A DNA stretch of 64,000 bases from Epithemia pelagica (taxonomy: Eukaryota; Protista; Bacillariophyta), in contig OX337229.1 of the NCBI GenBank assembly GCA_946965045.2, positions 1,054,001 through 1,118,000 of the forward strand, written 5' to 3'. The translations under genes and the position numbers were made by a program. Of the stretch, positions 49,216-57,524 are shown piece by piece. The notes beneath the pieces were generated by a model. The model had not been told where the DNA came from and searched no databases. It worked only from the letters and a program-made list of their open reading frames with translations. Positions within the stretch are counted from its first letter, which is position 1; each line of letters starts with the position of its first letter.

Positions 49216-51105
49216 ATGACAGACAACAACAACCGTTTGGAACTGACGATTCGCCTTTCGAATGGGACGCGGCTCACCATTGACGTGGGTCCAACGACTC
49301 CTACGGAATGTACCGTGTTGCGTGTCAAGGAACGGTTGGTCGACACGTGCCCCGTCGATCGACAACGATTAATTTACAAGGGACGAATTTTGGAAGATGA
49401 TCGGACCTTGCAAGATTATGGCATTGTCACGCAATCCACCTTGTTTTTGGTCAAGGGAACCGCACCACCGGCATCTGCTGCTGCATCGGCCACCACACCA
49501 AACTCCGCCGCTCCTACTGCGACTCCTCGTCCCACACCTTCGCCAAGCTCCTCCTCGACAACCACCACCAATAATAATCCATGGGGCGCGGCTGCCCCCA
49601 GCAACAATGCAAGTTCCATGATGGGCAATACCAACAACAACAACAATAGCATGTCGAACAGCAACCCCTTCATGTCTGGAAACCCCATGGCCATGATGAA
49701 CGACCCCAATCAGATGCAAGAAATGATGAATCATCCCATGATGCAATCCTTGTTGGACAATCCGCAATTGATGCAAAGCATGATGGAGATGCAGATGCAA
49801 TCCAATCCAGCCATGCGGCAAGTCATGGAAAACAATCCAGCCTTGAGACAAATGATGAATGATCCGGCCGTCCTCCAACAAGTCTCGCAAATGATGCGCA
49901 ATCCGGCCGCCTTTCAACAAGCCATGCGCAATCAAGATTTGGCCATGTCGCACATTGAAAACATGCCCGGGGGATTTGCCGCACTCTCGAGCATGTATCG
50001 AGATGTGCAACAACCACTCGAAGACTCCATGCGTGATAGCAACAACAGTGGTACATCGTCGTCGTCCTCGTCTCAAACTAACAACCGATCACAGCTCGAT
50101 GCCGGAGCCTCGGGATCCGCCATGCCCAACCCGTGGGGGGACAACACGAGTAGCAGCAATGCCAACAACAACAACAACAACAACAGTCCATCAAGTAGTT
50201 TGAATGCATCGCCCTTTCCTGGCCTCTTTCCTCCGACTACCTCTGGAGCGTCTGGAAGTACTACGAATAACAATGCCCAGCCAAGCAACCCGTGGATGAT
50301 GCCAGGTGGTATGGGTGCCTCGCTCCTGAACAACAACAATACTCCAGGCAGCAACAATGACATGAACAACGCCATGCTCAACATGTTGGACAATCCGATG
50401 GTCCAACAAATGATGGAACAACTGGTCACTTCCAACCCGGAAATGATTCAACAAGTCATGGCCGCACAAAATCCGGCCATGGCACAACTCTTTCGAGACA
50501 ATCCGGCCATGGCACAAAACCTCATGCGGACCATGATGAATCCACAAGTCATGAGGAGTATGATGCAAGTCCAACAAGCTATGTCCGGTATGCCACAACC
50601 GCCCTCCATGGCCAATAATAACACTACGAACAACAATAATAGCAATCCATTTGCTTCCAGTGCGGCTGCGGGTGGTGGTGCCCTGGATTTTTCGGCCCTG
50701 TTGCAGCAAATGAATCAACCATCCTCCTCCTTGTTGGGTGGTACTCCTCCTTCTTCTGCCATGAACAACCCGTTTCTCGGTGGATTCATGCCTCCGCCTC
50801 CAGCTTCCAACAACATGTTGCCAGCCGATCGATACCGAACCCAACTTCGGTCCTTGTACGATATGGGATTTGACAATGAACAACAGTCATGGGCAGCCCT
50901 GGAAGCGGCTCATGGCAATGTCAACCGGGCCGTCGATATGATACTCGCGGGAGAAGTGCCGGCGCCTGTAGTTGCCACTACAACCACAAGTGCACCGTCT
51001 CCCCCTTCCAGCAACGAAACGGCACCCGCCGACGCGAACACTGCCGAAGAGACAACAGAAGACACGACGGATCCCAAGGATGCAGCAGAAAAGAAAAATG
51101 ATTAA
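49216..51105 (+). CDS. Ubiquilin (Dsk2/UBQLN): UBL, STI1 repeats, UBA
   Basis: The UBL reads QRLIYKGRILEDDRTLQDYGI. The central repeats are M/N/P-rich (NPQLMQ, AMSHIENMPGGF), and the UBA reads RYRTQLRSLYDMGF...GNVNRAVD. Confidence 0.95.
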   Translation: MTDNNNRLELTIRLSNGTRLTIDVGPTTPTECTVLRVKERLVDTCPVDRQRLIYKGRILEDDRTLQDYGIVTQSTLFLVKGTAPPASAAASATTPNSAAPTATPRPTPSPSSSSTTTTNNNPWGAAAPSNNASSMMGNTNNNNNSMSNSNPFMSGNPMAMMNDPNQMQEMMNHPMMQSLLDNPQLMQSMMEMQMQSNPAMRQVMENNPALRQMMNDPAVLQQVSQMMRNPAAFQQAMRNQDLAMSHIENMPGGFAALSSMYRDVQQPLEDSMRDSNNSGTSSSSSSQTNNRSQLDAGASGSAMPNPWGDNTSSSNANNNNNNNSPSSSLNASPFPGLFPPTTSGASGSTTNNNAQPSNPWMMPGGMGASLLNNNNTPGSNNDMNNAMLNMLDNPMVQQMMEQLVTSNPEMIQQVMAAQNPAMAQLFRDNPAMAQNLMRTMMNPQVMRSMMQVQQAMSGMPQPPSMANNNTTNNNNSNPFASSAAAGGGALDFSALLQQMNQPSSSLLGGTPPSSAMNNPFLGGFMPPPPASNNMLPADRYRTQLRSLYDMGFDNEQQSWAALEAAHGNVNRAVDMILAGEVPAPVVATTTTSAPSPPSSNETAPADANTAEETTEDTTDPKDAAEKKND

Positions 51106-51236
51106 CATCCTCCTCGGCTCGTCGAACGACTCGCAGTAGAGATTACATACCACAACTATAGGAACTACATTATCACAAACAAACTGCGTTACCGCATCGC
51201 TTGAGGTCTATTTCAGCGATCCAATTGATTATACTC

Positions 51237-54200
51237 TCACGAGCTTGAAATGCCAAGCGCTTGTTTCAATTGGGTTCGTATCGACGCGGCCGAGCGTTTC
51301 CGTAACATGGAGGTGTCGCTGTCCAATAACTTGACGAGCAAAAAGGCCGAATAATTCTCCCGCAATAAATCGTTCTTGAGTTGAGCGTCATTGGTCCACA
51401 AATCAATCAACTGGCTGAGGCATGTCCTCATGCGAGGAATCGTCTGCTGTTCCTCCATGGAGGAATAGCCATTGTCACACACACTCGACAAGGACGAGTC
51501 GCCCTCGCCGCCGCCAAGACCAAATTCCTTTTGCACATCCACAAGGCGTAAATAGAGACGAAGAGAAATCACCAAGGCTTTGAATTTCACCTGACCTAAA
51601 GTGGGGGCGCTCTCTTCCAATCGTTTTTCGAGAAAGGAGAGACACAACACAATATCCTGGACCGACCAAGATCCAATGTCGTCCAAAGTGTTCTTGTGGT
51701 CATCCGACATCATGCGCTCATGCTTCTCTCTCTCTTTCTTTGATAACCGACTATATCCTTTTTTCACTAAGGACATCATATGTGCAAGAGGCGGAACTTG
51801 AGAGAATGCAATGAAACATAACATGCGACCCATAAACCACGGAAATCAACTCACCTCTTACATCCTCATACGTAGGGCCATAATCAATCTTGAGTTCTAC
51901 CCATTTGTCCATAGGAAAAACGAGAGGCCCCTGTTCAAGCAGAAAGTGTCCCAAGAGATAATGGACTGCACCTTCTGGGTCATGATCGGCTCGAACCGAC
52001 GGCACTTCGACTCCATCAGTTTCGTTTACATAGGATAGAATGTTCATTCTTGCTTCATCGTGCAGTTTGCCAGTTGTGTCATCTGTAATATCATAAAGAT
52101 TCTCTCCTGTTTCGTTCGTCTTGGTATCAAAACTCCAGATTTCACATTCACCATCATGGACAAAATTCTTAAACAAGAACAGCGAGCAATCCTTGTAGTC
52201 ACTCTGGCGAAGTGGTGCATACGTTCCAAGATCAAGCATCTCACCATTTTGAAGTTCGAAACTATCTCGCGGCATTCCGTCCACACTTTTGCAAAAGATA
52301 AACACACCCAGCCCGGAATTTGGGATCATTGACTTTCTAGTTTCAATTTCCAATTTGATTCCTCTAAACTGAAGAGTCATTTTTGGTCGAGAGTGTCCAT
52401 TGCTGTGACGGTCCTCTGGGAGCTGCTCGTACCGAATCTTGTCAGGGACCATCCACACCAAAGGGACGCATTTAGACTCAGCTATTTCCATACGCAACGG
52501 AAAACCAGAGGAAACATCCACCTTTTCCTCATAGCGCAGACATCCTGACCAAGCCACCCTCTCAGTGACCTCAGCAAAGTTCCGAATTGGACGACATCCA
52601 CGAGCACTTGACAGGAGAGCTAGTGACTCATCAATATAGCGCACTTTGAAGACCAAGCTTTTATCAAATCGATTCCGTACACATGATTCAACGACTCCAT
52701 AAAGAACAGAATATTCGTCTTCTAATGGAGCTTTGTGTTGCAGCCAATGTCGGCAAAACCCCTTTCCAACCAAAACATGATCCTCACGCGTGGATATCTT
52801 TAATCCCAAATTCTTCTCATAAATTTCTTCTTCTGCGATCAAAATATTCTTCACTGGAACACCAGCGGCTTTACCTGCGCTCTCCAAACAAGAGAAAACA
52901 CGAGGTCTTCCTGCGAGTTTGCCATGGCGATCAACGACTCTGAAGCGTGCAAGCTTTTCGTGAAGTACCGGGCCTTCATCCATGGAAGGCTTGTCCGTAA
53001 ACAAAAACCTCCAGTTCGGAGGAAAGTGGGGGATGGGCTTCCCACAAACTTCCATTGATAGTTTCGTACAGCTCTGTTTTTGTCATTCCATGTTAAGAGG
53101 ACCGTTTTTACCTGAATGCACCGCAAACACAATATAACTTACCCTGAACAAACAGCAATCCTTGTGGATGGTGGTGCTGTTGCGATTCCCGACACATGTC
53201 GCGCAGTGGCCACAATCGGGCGCTTGACACTGCGCACACTTTCTACATCGCTTTGCCTCCAGTTCACTAGAGTTCCACGACACAGTGTCTGGTGGTTGTA
53301 ATGCCCCTTCTATCACTAGCTCGTCGTATGCCCGAAAATCCTCCCGAACGTCACCATCATCGTAGCGTACACTACAAATCATATCAACACCTTCGCCAGA
53401 CATTTTGCTGACCGTTCCCCAGTGCCAACTTCCGTCGGTGAACTTGGCATAGCATCGAGCTCCCACAGTTGGTCCGTTTGTCCGCTTCTGTGACTGTGAG
53501 GGCTTTGGTTTCGCCCGTCTCTCTTTTTTTGTTTCTTTCGCTAGATTGTCAGCATTCGTTTTGGAATAGAATTGCTCAGTAACGAAATCCTTTATTGAGA
53601 GAAAGAGTGAGTGGAAAAGATTGTCTCAAACGAAACCGAGAGCAACAAGGCACGTACTCGTCGAGGTACAGATGACCGCACATCACCGTCGTCAAAACGA
53701 ATACGATAGAGAAAAACTCGGGAATTCCCCTGTTGTCGCTTTGACGGCGTCCCACCCTTTCGAATGCCTGTGATTTTTCCCCAGTACCATGACTAGAAAC
53801 AACATGAGATAAGACTCCCCAATAGCTTGGGTTATGATGTAAAGGACTTACGTCGGTGTCTGGCCATAGAGCGTAGACTCTGGTGCCAACCGGAGGCTCT
53901 TCGACATCACCGGGAATAGAATCAAGGGCAGTTTTGTCACCTTCAGCTTCGTTAACGACATGCTGCTTTTTGGCCCTTTTCTTGGAACTAGATGCAACTC
54001 CTTTCCTTGACCGATCTGTCTTTGTTGGTGTATTAAGAACTTGCTCATCTCGAAAAGGGGAGGGCAACCTATTAGGAGTCGCACTCGAATCAGGGTTACT
54101 TTTATCGCCTTCAGCTTCCGATACAACTTGTCGCTTTTTGGCCCTTTTCTTTGAATTGGACGCAATGCCTTTTCTTGAACGATCTGCCTCTGTAGGCGTA

Positions 54201-54970
54201 TCTGGAGCTTCCAAATCAAAGGAAGGAGACCGCAATCTAATGGGTGTCTCCCTCTTTCTCTTGGACAATCGGAGAGGTTCTTCAGGCCTATCGCTGTCAG
54301 CAATCGACGGCTCACTTGAACTGCATATACGAGAATCATCTGTTGTTGCGCTCTTGGACAATCGGAGAGGTTCTGCAGGGGTATCACTGTCTGCAGGCGT
54401 ATCACTGTCAGCAATCGACCGTTCACTTGTACTGCATGTGCGAGAATCATCTGTTGATGCGTTGACACTATCAGAAACTTGATTGACTATTGAGGGAGAA
54501 CTCCTGTCTATGGTTGGAACAGGCGATGTCGAGGGCTCGTCTAAATCAGACTCGTTCTTAACCCCACGAATAATCTGCACTGGGGTCTGCTGTTCTGAGG
54601 CTGAGAATAAAGAATGCAATTCATCGGAACAGATTTGAAGGTCCTCTTGAAACGAACGTCCAGGCAAGGCTGGAGGTTTCCTATCGCTCTCATCATCCGA
54701 AAGAGTAAGGTCGATCACCACCTTCTCATGTTCAATATTGGGACGTCTCCTCCATCGCCGGCGCTCCTTGATCCCTTGGCTGGACCGAACAAATACCGTG
54801 GAACTGGTGTAACTCTCGTAACTTTGGGGTAAAGGGATATCCGACAAACGACCGGACAGGTTATTCTCTCCATCGACCGGCATAAACTGTGAAGTCACAC
54901 TTTTTCGAGCTATTGGCCGTGCGCAGTTCTCTCCATTTGACTTGCGATTGTGGATAAAATGGTCCGTCAT
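51237..54970 (-). CDS. Multidomain chromatin protein: 2 Tudor domains, zf-CXXC, possible MBD-like and third barrel segments, divergent SET domain; 5 exons (54970-53852, 53792-53658, 53589-53143, 53073-51855, 51766-51237), about 1149 aa
   Basis: Four GT-AG introns (59, 68, 69 and 88 bp) keep one frame. Tudor 1 is VGTRVYALWPDTD|SWYWGKI...YRIRFDDGD and Tudor 2 is VGARCYAKFTDGSWHWGTV...SVRYDDGD. The CXXC is CRKCAQCQAPDCGHCATC...CCLFR|SC. The SET has SGLGVF, LGTYAP, YVNE and ELKIDYGPTY. Confidence 0.85.
53933..54461. repeat. Two sets of in-frame internal duplications in exon 1 of the Tudor/CXXC/SET gene
   Basis: An about 100-nt unit occurs at 53933 and 54101 (period 168 nt). A 93-nt unit at 54258-54350 is repeated at 54351-54461, where it contains an extra 18-nt duplication. 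Confidence 0.85.
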
Positions 54971-55274
54971 TGTTACAGCGCCACCGTTGTTGTGGTCTTC
55001 GGCAAGTGCAAAGTTACAATAGCTCTATCTCTATGCTCTATCGATCTGATTGTGATAGCTATTCGTATTCTCATCTATCTCATGGATCTGTTCTCCCGAT
55101 CCCGATCGCGCCTACCAACTTCGCGCGCGCGCCGCTCGGGGCCATCGCCCGGAAGCAGAAACGGAGCAAAGGACGGACGTTCATGGTTCATTTCTCTCCA
55201 TCCATCTCAACAATAAATTCTCAGATTCTTCTCTTGTCCATGTCCGCATGTGCATCAGAGAACGAACGGCCGAC

Positions 55275-57524
55275 ATGACCGACACTCAAAGCAACCATGG
55301 ACTTTTGGAACTTCTTCGTCAGCCAGAAAGCCTAGGTATTGCACTAGGTGCAGGACATGATACAGAGAAACAAGAACAGGATCTTCGACGTCAACTGCGA
55401 CAGACGTGTCAGACCCTCTTTCAACGGGTCGAACAATTGGCTGTATTCTACAATCAGCTCCTTCAAAATAATGACAGCAAGACTCTTTCAGGAATTGACC
55501 ACCTGCACTTGGGAGATGAAAAATCCATGAGTGCGGAAATGATATTTGGGCAGATTGAACTCCAGAATACCGCCTTGCAAAAACTTCTCCGCAATGCCAA
55601 CAAAGCTCTCTCCAAGTCGGTCGAATCGGGGAAAGATGTTCGGCTAATCGAAGATGACGATGATGAAAATGACAGTGACAAAGACAAAAATGCCATGACA
55701 CCTGAATCAGATGAGCAGCAATCAGATGATAGTGAAGACGATGACGAAGAACGGAGAATACGCGAACGGATGGACCGTGTCATGGACGAAATGGAAGAAA
55801 GTGAACAGGAGGAGGATGGTATGGAAGAACATTTGAAGGAAAAGAAAGGTGCACATGAGGAAGCTCATCTAGAAGATCCGGCGGCAGAGGAGCTTAATGA
55901 TGGCTTCTTCGATTTCAATGAAATGGAGGCTTTTGCGGATGAGGAAGAGGAATACCTGCCCGATGAGGCTTTTGGTGAAGAAGAGCAGAATGAAAAGGGC
56001 CTTCAAGATACTCGGTCGTTTCATCAGAAATTGCGAGATGGTGATGGGGAACTTGAATCCGATGAAGATGAGGAAGAAGAGGATTTGGTGCTTCGGGCCA
56101 AATCCACTGTTCGACGAAAACGCTATCGAGAAGACGATGAAGTTGATGCTCTCTTCAAACTTTATGAAACCCCCATCGTAGAAGACGATTCTGACGAGGA
56201 TGAGCTGGATGTCACAAAAATGACGGCTGCAGATTTGTTTGGAAAACCAACAAAACGCTACTATGACAAATGGTACGGAGGAAAGAAGAAGCAAGTAACA
56301 CAATCAACACCACAAAATAAAAAGAAGAAAGCTGGTGACGGCGACGATGACTCGTGGGACGAATATGACTTTGAAAATGAGGATGCTGATGAAGTTGTCG
56401 GTTGGAACGATATGCCGAAAACCAGTCAAAGTACAAGAAAAAACATGGAAAATGACGGAGCTGCAACCACTGAAAATGATAAGTCTAAACCGAACGAAAG
56501 TGGTAATGGATCGCCAGTACCCAAAGACCGCAAGGAAGAAAAGTTGAACAAGCAAATCGAAAAACTGGAAAACGATATGATCTCAGAGAAGCCGTGGCAG
56601 ATGAAAGGTGAAATTCCAGGCACGGCACGTCCGGTAGATTCGTTGCTTGATTCGACACCAGAATTCGAAATTGCTTCCAAACAAGCCCCTGTTATCACAG
56701 TGGAGAGGACTGCTGACCTTGAGGAAGTGATTAAGAAACGGATCCTTGAAGAGGATTGGGATGACGTCGTTCCTCGAGAATTGCCAGATGTGGCATGGAA
56801 CAAAAAGAAGGGAGAACTCCCTGAAGTTGGCCAGGAAAAATCGAAACTTGGTCTCGGAGAATTGTATGAACGAGAGTACCTTAAAAAGGTTGCAGGCTAT
56901 GATGTAGATGCAGTAGAAAAGGAAACAGAAGAAGACAAGGCCAAGAATGAGATGAAAACTCTTTTTGCCAATCTATGCAGCAAATTAGATGCTCTCTCGA
57001 ACTATCATTTTGCACCTCGTCCTGTTGCCGATGAAGCCGAAATCAGACCCATTGCACAACCTGCTATTGCAATGGAAGAGGTCCTCCCTCTTCATGTAAG
57101 CGATGCTCGTGGAGTCGCACCCGAAGAAGTTTACGGTGCCAAGCGCGGTAGAGAGGCAGTTCTAAGAGGGGACACCGAATTGGAGCAACGAGACAAGAAA
57201 CGGTTGCGCTCGTCGAAAAAGGCAGCGAGGCGAAAGGCTCGAAAAGAAAAGTTGGCGGACGAGAAGCTCCTATCGAGATTGGAACCTGGCCTTGGCCTCA
57301 ATAATCCGTACGAGAAGCGCAAGATGCGCGAGGAATTGGCGGCCGCCCGTGCACGTGGCAAGGTGTCCAAGGGAGAAGAAGACACACAATCATACGGCAA
57401 GAGTACCACATTCTTCAAGCGCATGCAAAATGAAGCACGAGAAACCATTCTCAACAAACAAGGTGCGGGAGAACCAGAGAAAGGGGCCAAGAAATCTGCA
57501 AAATCTTCGTCGCTCAAGTTGTAG
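55275..57524 (+). CDS. MPP10: U3 snoRNP protein Mpp10
   Basis: Acidic N-half with LNDGFFDFNEMEAF. KPWQMKGE...RPVDSLL, VIKKRILEEDWDDV, KSKLGLGELYEREY, KLDALSNYHFAP, IAMEEVLP and a C-terminal FFKRMQ...SSSLKL are present. Confidence 0.96.
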   Translation: MTDTQSNHGLLELLRQPESLGIALGAGHDTEKQEQDLRRQLRQTCQTLFQRVEQLAVFYNQLLQNNDSKTLSGIDHLHLGDEKSMSAEMIFGQIELQNTALQKLLRNANKALSKSVESGKDVRLIEDDDDENDSDKDKNAMTPESDEQQSDDSEDDDEERRIRERMDRVMDEMEESEQEEDGMEEHLKEKKGAHEEAHLEDPAAEELNDGFFDFNEMEAFADEEEEYLPDEAFGEEEQNEKGLQDTRSFHQKLRDGDGELESDEDEEEEDLVLRAKSTVRRKRYREDDEVDALFKLYETPIVEDDSDEDELDVTKMTAADLFGKPTKRYYDKWYGGKKKQVTQSTPQNKKKKAGDGDDDSWDEYDFENEDADEVVGWNDMPKTSQSTRKNMENDGAATTENDKSKPNESGNGSPVPKDRKEEKLNKQIEKLENDMISEKPWQMKGEIPGTARPVDSLLDSTPEFEIASKQAPVITVERTADLEEVIKKRILEEDWDDVVPRELPDVAWNKKKGELPEVGQEKSKLGLGELYEREYLKKVAGYDVDAVEKETEEDKAKNEMKTLFANLCSKLDALSNYHFAPRPVADEAEIRPIAQPAIAMEEVLPLHVSDARGVAPEEVYGAKRGREAVLRGDTELEQRDKKRLRSSKKAARRKARKEKLADEKLLSRLEPGLGLNNPYEKRKMREELAAARARGKVSKGEEDTQSYGKSTTFFKRMQNEARETILNKQGAGEPEKGAKKSAKSSSLKL

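Follow-up and report, generated by a model that had tools for sequence, protein, structure and literature searches.

The minus strand of a 64,000-nucleotide (nt) stretch of Epithemia pelagica DNA (contig OX337229.1, positions 1,054,001 to 1,118,000; hereafter the window, in whose own numbering all positions are given) carries a spliced gene of five exons that encodes a chromatin protein of 1149 residues. The protein is probably an expressed, chromatin-targeted lysine methyltransferase of the PR/SET type and a member of a large diatom family. Its coding sequence of 3450 nt (51237..54970; 1149 codons and a stop codon) opens with the ATG at 54970, closes with the stop at 51237-51239 and crosses four long open reading frames (ORFs) that lie in different frames. 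Exon 1 (53852..54970) comprises 373 codons, the last 13 of which form the start of a first Tudor-like barrel, and is separated by intron 1 (53793..53851; 59 nt, GTAAGT..CTAG) from exon 2 (53658..53792; 45 codons), which holds the remainder of that barrel. Intron 2 (53590..53657; 68 nt, GTACGT..AAAG; the joint is read with the cut shifted by +1 base) is followed by the 149 codons of exon 3 (53143..53589) with a basic linker, a second Tudor-like barrel and the first seven cysteines of a CXXC zinc finger. Intron 3 (53074..53142; 69 nt, GTAAGT..ACAG) falls between the seventh and the eighth cysteine of that finger. The conserved core of the family is contained in exon 4 (51855..53073; 406 codons plus 1 nt), and after the phase 1 intron 4 (51767..51854; 88 nt, GTGAGT..TTAG) exon 5 (51237..51766) adds a conserved C-terminal region (KGYSRLS..., ..CDNGY.., L..LW..D) and the stop codon. 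All features of the gene given below lie on the same strand.

An earlier sequence-only reading of the window had joined these pieces by hand into a single five-exon gene of about 1149 codons, and this model holds. The four joints are present in contigs of a public run, X4, where they appear as CT..AC on the plus strand and hence as GT..AG on the minus strand, and the exons sum to 1149 codons plus stop. Introns 1 to 3 have been removed together on one X4 contig and intron 4 on a second; the two contigs do not overlap, and the gap between them (51925-51952) lies inside the continuous ORF of exon 4. Three further runs, X1 to X3, show the unspliced genomic form, and X4 holds the spliced form only. 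Given this, and given an assembly of 39 Mb compared to 120-197 Mb for the other three runs, we infer that X4 is a transcriptome. The short motifs on which the sequence-only reading had relied (DDGD, FPPNW, VVDRHGK, FSCLES, LVGKGF, FKVRY, GLG, YAP, YVNE and ELKIDYG) are all present in the translation.

The gene structure is mirrored in relatives. The closest full-length relative, P0015 from Epithemia clementina (KAL7576260, a 'hypothetical protein' of 1207 residues), has an identity of 60% in exon 4 and of 46% in exon 3. It runs unbroken through all four intron sites of the window (..ARWPENDSWYWG.., ..LVPRTDFITEQ.., ..CCFFRGCTQL.., ..YEDVRVRKGYSRLS..), including the one between exons 1 and 2, and in the gene for P0015, introns occupy the positions of the three downstream introns 2, 3 and 4. 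Many other family proteins likewise pass without interruption from ..IDYGxxYExVR to ..KGYSRL.., that is, across the boundary of exons 4 and 5. That unrelated ORFs have been wrongly joined, or that X4 shows a processed DNA copy in place of RNA, is therefore very improbable. Such an artefact could draw on the joints coming from a single run of a single study whose library type is not on record, but it would have to explain why removal of four canonical GT..AG introns yields a single frame of 1149 codons, why an independently annotated protein shares both the order of parts and the intron sites, why so many relatives are continuous across the last boundary, and why X4 lacks the unspliced form. 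We regard it as largely refuted already.

The window was analysed exon by exon, and contiguous spans were taken from natural homologues. Two Tudor-like barrels are predicted upstream of the zinc finger. Barrel 1 (53670..53890) consists of VGTRVYALWPDTD and, beyond intron 1, SWYWG...YRIRFDDGD; barrel 2 (53314..53469) reads VGARCYAKFTDGSWHWG...VRYDDGD. Both carry aromatic residues (W/F, W/Y, F/Y) and the DDGD motif at the expected positions, and they resemble each other (tblastn E-value (E) 8e-4). In Pfam scans of the separate exon pieces, exon 2 alone matched Tudor_5 and Tudor_3 at E 0.1-0.2, and exon 3 alone matched Tudor_5 (PF18359, the family of SETDB1 Tudor 1) at E 0.0077 and Agenet at E 0.13; these matches are sub-threshold, the Tudor scores of the two pieces being 12.7 and 16.4 bits at a cut-off of 31. 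In homologues the cut-off is passed: the tandem region of P0015 (residues 340-580) reaches 33.1 bits for Tudor_5, and the paralogues P0024, P0027 and P0033 reach 37-41 bits. The stretch of P0015 homologous to barrel 1 also matches a BAHCC1-like Tudor and Tudor_3, and profile A5, built from exon 3 and 13 homologues, finds the Tudor domains of KDM4A and PHF1/PHF19 among PDB chains at E 0.016-1. The two barrels proposed from the sequence are thus borne out at the level of the family, where only homologues pass the Pfam threshold, and we accept both as Tudor-type on these profile matches.

The barrels are followed by a zf-CXXC domain (53068..53247) that is split by intron 3. Its cysteines occupy residues 115, 118, 121, 126, 129, 132 and 146 of exon 3 and residue 2 of exon 4, so that the pattern CxxCxxCx4-5CxxCxxCx8-14Cx4C is complete across the intron. 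The eighth cysteine is conserved in 90% of relatives in sets of 60 and 79 members. The exon-3 piece, shortened by the exon end, matches zf-CXXC (PF02008) in Pfam at E 1e-4 to 2e-4 (21.6-22.7 bits, cut-off 26.5), and the paralogue P0027 scores 28.1 bits. Among PDB chains, profile A5 finds the CXXC domain of DNMT1 as the best match (27.4 bits, E 4e-5), then that of MLL1 (E 0.0016), and further those of TET3, KDM2A/B, FBXL19, CFP1 and MBD1. An eight-cysteine CXXC that is completed across an intron and lacks KFGG, as had been read from the sequence, is therefore in place.

The part of the finger that would read DNA is a different matter. In type-1 CXXC domains, which contain KFGG, the CpG is read by KQ or RQ, and type-3 domains have a short linker and HQ (Long et al., PMC3685328). 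The linker of the family is two residues shorter than that of DNMT1 (a gap of two columns beside KFGG); KFGG is not conserved in it, and K-E/D stands where DNMT1 has K-Q, mostly as ..K[ED]x-C. The linker of the window protein is VGNRNSTTIHKD, ending ..TTIHKD-C, and contains neither KFGG nor the KQ/RQ of type 1 nor the HQ of type 3. None of 48 CXXC copies of relatives has KFGG, and a single one (P0018) has RQ. With these residues missing, binding to unmethylated CpG is not predicted; by its sequence the domain belongs to the zf-CXXC family and falls outside the CpG-reading subtypes 1 and 3. A type-2 form, represented by CxxC-1 and CxxC-2 of MBD1, lacks the DNA loop and binds proteins (PMC3685328).

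Numerous database relatives (P0006-P0009, P0016, P0021 and others) start with 'MC..' exactly at the last CXXC cysteine. Possibly, these are ORF-style gene calls cut at the intron within the CXXC, which is present in both the window and E. clementina. If so, the upstream Tudor and CXXC parts of those relatives are missing from the databases.

The segment directly downstream of the finger, which had been likened to a degenerate MBD, is referred to here as module A (52798..53067; residues 3-92 of exon 4). In a structure model of exon-4 residues 1-205, built with 60 sequences (mean predicted local distance difference test score (pLDDT) 88.9, predicted template modelling (TM) score 0.78), it is folded as three strands followed by two helices with a pLDDT of about 90. 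Module A always stands directly after a CXXC, starting at the last cysteine of the finger (the module's second residue), and in the paralogues P0014, P0027, P0029, P0034, P0071 and P0167 the CXXC-A cassette occurs in tandem, in two to five copies. The family consensus of the module, ..KAQPxPGLPxGWxFYF..(variable)..LxGLxLLSPxGxxFRSxExA..FY..G, recalls what we take to be the MBD signature. In one relative, P0035, Pfam aligns the MBD family in register (residues 12-61 to profile positions 6-53 of 77) at E 0.009-0.012. The score of 15.6 bits is below the cut-off of 21, and the match is the only one among 79 copies of the module, corresponding to P ~4e-7 for one pre-named family and ~3e-5 after 79 copies. 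At the sequence level we regard it as a real hint.

Other searches gave nothing of this kind. The window module has no match to MBD (PF01429) at E<=10 in Pfam, and neither have the other 78 copies a Pfam MBD match. The profiles A2 and A4 retrieved no MBD chain from the PDB, and residues 1-100 of P0035 gave chance-level matches only. No MBD appeared in the lists of the fold searches, which were filled by the neighbouring barrel, module A never being searched alone, and ESM Atlas features of the module yielded no usable match. Where the family reads ..KFRS.., the window has ..RVFSC.., and its copy is among the least MBD-like. An MBD-derived fold is thus conceivable, with the balance tilting somewhat towards another origin, and binding of methyl-CpG by the module is far less likely than that.

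These two domains had been the basis for the most far-reaching proposal of the sequence-only reading, namely that the CXXC binds unmethylated and the MBD-like module methylated CpG, and that histone methylation is thereby written according to the state of DNA methylation. The significant CXXC homology, the MBD-like consensus with its in-register match in P0035 and the constant placement of module A beside a CXXC would all fit such a sensor, and CG methylation is found on transposons in diatoms (PMC8566409). Yet the residues by which a CXXC would contact CpG are missing apart from the RQ of P0018, the window copy of module A departs from the consensus at the position just given, and neither Pfam, the PDB profiles nor the fold searches, within the limit stated for the last, returned an MBD for it. 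As the residues known to read DNA are absent from both modules of the studied protein, sensing of both CpG states is unsupported by known binding determinants, and we consider this proposal improbable.

Residues 93-190 of exon 4 (module B; 52504..52797) were earlier described as a barrel-like block (LVGKGF...FKVRY), and the model indeed shows a confident SH3-like barrel with a helix (pLDDT 89). Its best structural matches are the BAH domains of EBS (Z 5.7), AIPP3 (5.4) and DNMT1 (BAH1; 5.2-5.5) as well as those of Rsc2, BAHCC1, TNRC18 and ZMET2, although Tudor, chromo and PWWP barrels score on a par with them at Z 4-5.2. Foldseek gives the BAH domains of BAHCC1 and TNRC18 at E ~0.1, and an Atlas cluster of PTM/DIR17-type Tudors aligns with the barrel at a TM-score of 0.69. 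Pfam finds no BAH (PF01426) match in it. From the model, barrel B appears to be a Royal-family or BAH-like barrel, and a finer assignment is not justified.

The remainder of exon 4 (residues ~205-406; 51856..52461) contains NSGLGVF, GTYAP, YVNE, VHYLLGH and ELKIDYGPTYEDVR and is predicted to adopt a divergent PR/SET-type fold. The AlphaFold2 model of exon 4 has a mean pLDDT of 73, with 80-90 in most SET strands. Searched with Foldseek, it retrieves PRDM9 first (E 1.8e-3, probability 1.0, TM-score by target 0.51), followed by SET7/9 and by PRDM11, 1, 3, 2, 4 and 5. In an all-against-all search with VIA, almost all of the top 50 matches are SET or PR domains, led by PRDM2 (Z 8.5, root-mean-square deviation 3.7, 129 residues aligned), PRDM3 (8.5), PRDM9 (8.4, 159 aligned), PRDM5 (8.3) and PRDM4 (8.0), with SET8, Set1, SET7/9 and EZH2 next at 7.6-7.9. 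As Z 8-8.5 is only 'middling' by the standards of VIA, and Z 7-8 can reflect a common arrangement, the case for a SET fold lies in the uniformity of the match list and not in the Z values. Language-model features point weakly but independently the same way, with PF00856 accounting for 26 of the 30 closest Atlas clusters. The SET domain proposed from GLG, YAP and ELKIDYG, with YVNE at the place of RFINH, is thus borne out as a fold by the predicted structure.

Conservation was assessed in 60 members that are 35-71% identical to the window protein (average ~45%). Invariant are K97, D123, N145, E146, H166, Y197, E198 and R201, and G49, G51, Y80, P82, Y167, Y193 and G194 are conserved in >=90%. 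They form the stretches G49xG51 (NxGLGVF), G78xY80xP82, K97, D123xT125, Y-V-N145-E146, H166-Y167 and E188..Y193-G194..Y197-E198..R201, which by eye correspond in their motifs to the SET active site. The tyrosine of ELxIDYG occupies what we take to be the position of the SET catalytic tyrosine, equivalent to Tyr-357 of PRDM9. Exchange of Tyr-357 for serine nearly abolishes the activity of PRDM9 (PMC4919437). The near-invariance of Tyr, Asn, Glu and His within these motifs suggests that the domain may be catalytically active.

Several observations weigh against an expressed and active enzyme. As to expression, the RNA status of X4 follows from its contents, its library type being unrecorded, and assembled contigs give neither strand nor expression level. 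As to the fold, the insert between the two SET halves is poorly modelled (pLDDT 45-60), and sequence methods do not recognise the domain: Pfam gives no SET match at E<=1 in the window and 12 relatives, the profiles A1 and A3 (13 and 60 members) retrieve no SET chain from the PDB at E<=10, and a word-seeded search with profile A3 through 5.8 billion proteins returns family members only and no PF00856 protein. Exon 4 as a single sequence and its last 67 residues likewise gave chance-level PDB matches only. As to catalysis, the canonical NH of (R)FINHSC reads NE, both residues being invariant, and the mapping of catalytic residues relies on a comparison of motifs with PRDM9 and not on a residue-level alignment by a tool. 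Animal PR domains mostly have little or no activity.

Most animal PRDM proteins recruit other enzymes, and the SET-like domain could similarly be a non-catalytic scaffold of the PR type within a multivalent reader or adaptor protein. Such a protein would agree with the closest solved structures being PR domains, several of which have no known activity, with the change of NH to NE, with the failure of any sequence model of active SET domains to recognise the domain, and with the multiplication of the CXXC-A cassette in some paralogues, which fits a binding role. However, the positions aligned by motif with the catalytic tyrosines and the cofactor-binding asparagine are invariant or nearly so in the 60 members, which goes beyond what a scaffold usually needs, and PRDM9 is active although its NH motif has no His either. 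We regard a scaffold as unlikely, albeit as a serious alternative, and retain an active methyltransferase as the favoured interpretation.

Neither exon 4 nor exon 5 contains cysteine-rich pre-SET or post-SET clusters, and it is barrel B that precedes the SET fold. Downstream of this fold, the C-terminal ~175 residues in the region of exon 5 are conserved in homologues (KGYSRLS.., ..F.., ..CDNGY.., ..L..LW..D); they have no Pfam match, and their PDB matches, to long helical proteins, are at chance level only. At the other end, the N-terminal ~360 residues, all within exon 1, are rich in Ser, Asp, Arg and Pro and contain basic clusters, KKRAKK(R) and RRRWRRR, that resemble nuclear localization signals and may act as such. 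Pfam finds no match in this part.

The protein belongs to a family that is both large and unannotated. With clustering at 50% identity, a profile of exon 4 recovers representatives of 651 clusters when E is limited to 1e-3; at E<=1e-10 there are 487 and at E<=1e-30 still 245. The family thus comprises at least 651 clusters. The named members are all from diatoms (Epithemia, Seminavis, Entomoneis with two, Proboscia and Cylindrotheca), one of them, from Seminavis, being labelled 'CXXC-type domain-containing protein', and the remaining members stem from metagenomes and run assemblies. No SET annotation was found among family members, and Pfam scans over 13, 60 and 79 of them gave no SET, BAH or significant MBD match. 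The core shared by the family consists of CXXC, module A, barrel B, the very divergent PR/SET-type fold and the conserved C-terminal region. Architectures vary between the core alone and the core extended by Tudors or carrying one to five CXXC-A cassettes; in the studied gene, it follows the tandem Tudor pair and a long N-terminus of low-complexity basic and acidic sequence. The order of parts given by the sequence-only reading, Tudor-Tudor-CXXC-(module)-barrel-SET, was therefore right, while its likening of the module to an MBD comes down to one sub-threshold match and a consensus motif. Neither the architecture nor the family was found described in the literature searched, which does not prove that no description exists. 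We conclude that the family is a divergent one of the SET type, so far unannotated, in which reader modules are combined in a new way. A viral SET cluster tops the list of language-model matches, yet viral contigs scanned with profile A3 contained no relatives, so there is no sign of an origin from giant viruses.

Taken together, we propose that the Tudor pair and barrel B would dock on modified histone tails and that the CXXC-A cassette may contact DNA or a partner protein. The readers together would bring the SET domain to chromatin, and there it could transfer methyl groups from S-adenosylmethionine to a lysine, most likely of a histone. The nuclear location, the ligand of each reader module and the substrate are presumed.

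Known chromatin proteins resemble this arrangement in parts. The best structural matches, the PR/SET domains of PRDM9, PRDM2/RIZ1 and PRDM3, likewise lack pre- and post-SET zinc clusters, and the motifs of the studied protein resemble the PR type, with GLGVF close to the start, YVN where FINH would stand and a final ELxxxYG..Y. In contrast to PRDM proteins, the studied protein has no C2H2 zinc-finger array, KRAB or SSXRD, shows no detectable sequence similarity to them and has ~60 residues inserted between the SET halves. The assignment to the PR subtype is tentative, as SET8, Set1, SET7/9 and EZH2 score within 1 Z unit.

The sequence-only reading had instead pointed to an analogue of SETDB1 or MLL, of which a loose architectural likeness remains, in that readers are joined to a presumed writer. 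As in SETDB1 (triple Tudor-MBD-pre-SET-split SET-post-SET), barrels come first, a small module occupies the position of the MBD and the SET domain has a large insert; the best Pfam Tudor model, PF18359, is moreover that of SETDB1 Tudor 1. However, the Tudors number two instead of three, there is a CXXC, the identity of the MBD is unproven, Cys-rich pre- and post-SET regions are lacking, and by no sequence test is the SET domain of the SUV39/SETDB type. CXXC and SET are combined within one polypeptide in MLL1/KMT2A and within one complex in CFP1-Set1, which represent CXXC-guided H3K4 methylation, whereas the window CXXC lacks KFGG and KQ, and PHD, bromo, FYRN/FYRC and post-SET domains, as in KMT2 proteins, gave no Pfam match in the studied protein. 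The protein is thus no relative of either; it lacks the pre- and post-SET parts, and its nearest structures are PR domains.

DNMT1 provides the best sequence match for the CXXC, the same order of CXXC, spacer and BAH-like barrel, and, with BAH1, a recurrent match for barrel B. It differs in that the studied protein has a SET fold and no C5 DNA methyltransferase, module A takes the place of the autoinhibitory linker, and the similarity to BAH is weak, being on a par with that to Tudor and chromo barrels. MBD1, with an MBD and three CXXC domains, shares the combination of CXXC and (putative) MBD, and its CxxC-1 and CxxC-2 also lack the DNA-binding loop and bind protein (PMC3685328). Here the order is reversed, with the CXXC directly before the module, whose MBD identity is unproven, and MBD1 lacks a catalytic domain.

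In 2011, a survey covering two model diatoms did not find SETDB1 or EHMT2 in either (PMC3145265), H3K9 methylation is present in Phaeodactylum, and diatoms are reported in a review to lack DNMT1 (both PMC8566409). It is tempting to speculate that the family supplies the missing heterochromatin-type methyltransferases of diatoms, that the CXXC-A cassettes couple CG methylation of transposons to lysine methylation, and that the order of CXXC and BAH-like barrel is maybe a DNMT1-like remnant. We consider this a long shot; the reported absences of DNMT1, SETDB1 and EHMT2 motivate the idea but do not count as evidence.

As surveys of the chromatin enzymes of diatoms and other protists count SET proteins through Pfam, they are likely to miss the family. 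If its members are active, diatoms have far more methyltransferases than the lists show. The reader modules also offer a testable idea of how marks may be targeted where CG methylation is restricted to transposons and neither DNMT1 nor a recognised SETDB1/G9a is present. Finally, the gene illustrates how a domain can escape ORF-based annotation when a short conserved intron lies within a zinc finger.

With respect to its genomic setting, the gene is present as a single copy (a tblastn search of the window gave no second one). A ubiquilin-type gene on the plus strand (49216-51105), with a ubiquitin-like domain, UBQLN1/STI1 repeats, a UBA domain and very long Asn-, Met- and Gln-rich stretches, is convergent with it, the stop codons lying 131 nt apart. 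The X4 contig that bears exon 5 extends ~115 nt beyond 51200, into the 3' end of this neighbour. On the other side, a gene for Mpp10 of the U3 snoRNP (55248-57524, plus strand; Pfam E 1e-92) is oriented head-to-head, and the 277 nt between the two start codons make a shared divergent promoter region likely. We also considered a transposon-borne gene, which is ruled out by the ubiquilin and Mpp10 neighbours and the single copy in the window; the studied gene is an ordinary chromosomal gene and no part of a mobile element. Synteny with the P0015 locus of E. clementina was not seen; the neighbours differ, and the E. clementina contig begins close by.

Exon 1 is repetitive. Two internal duplications are discernible by eye between 53900 and 54470 on the minus strand, one of ..TDDSR.CS.SE.SIADSD.P..EPLRLSK.. 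and one of ..DRSRKG.AS.SKKRAKK..VV.EAEGDK.., each present twice, and an 18-nt tandem repeat lies at 54372-54413. The X2 contigs break at 54037-54079, probably owing to these repeats. Compared to the window (51200-55000), the runs X2 to X4 differ at 17 positions, without insertions or deletions; they represent one sample for X2 and two further ones for X3 and X4, all from one study, and the differences are probably alleles or strains. Eight of the 16 coding variants are synonymous, among them the only one in exon 4, and the non-synonymous ones sit in the low-complexity N-terminal, linker and C-terminal parts and in a loop of Tudor 2.

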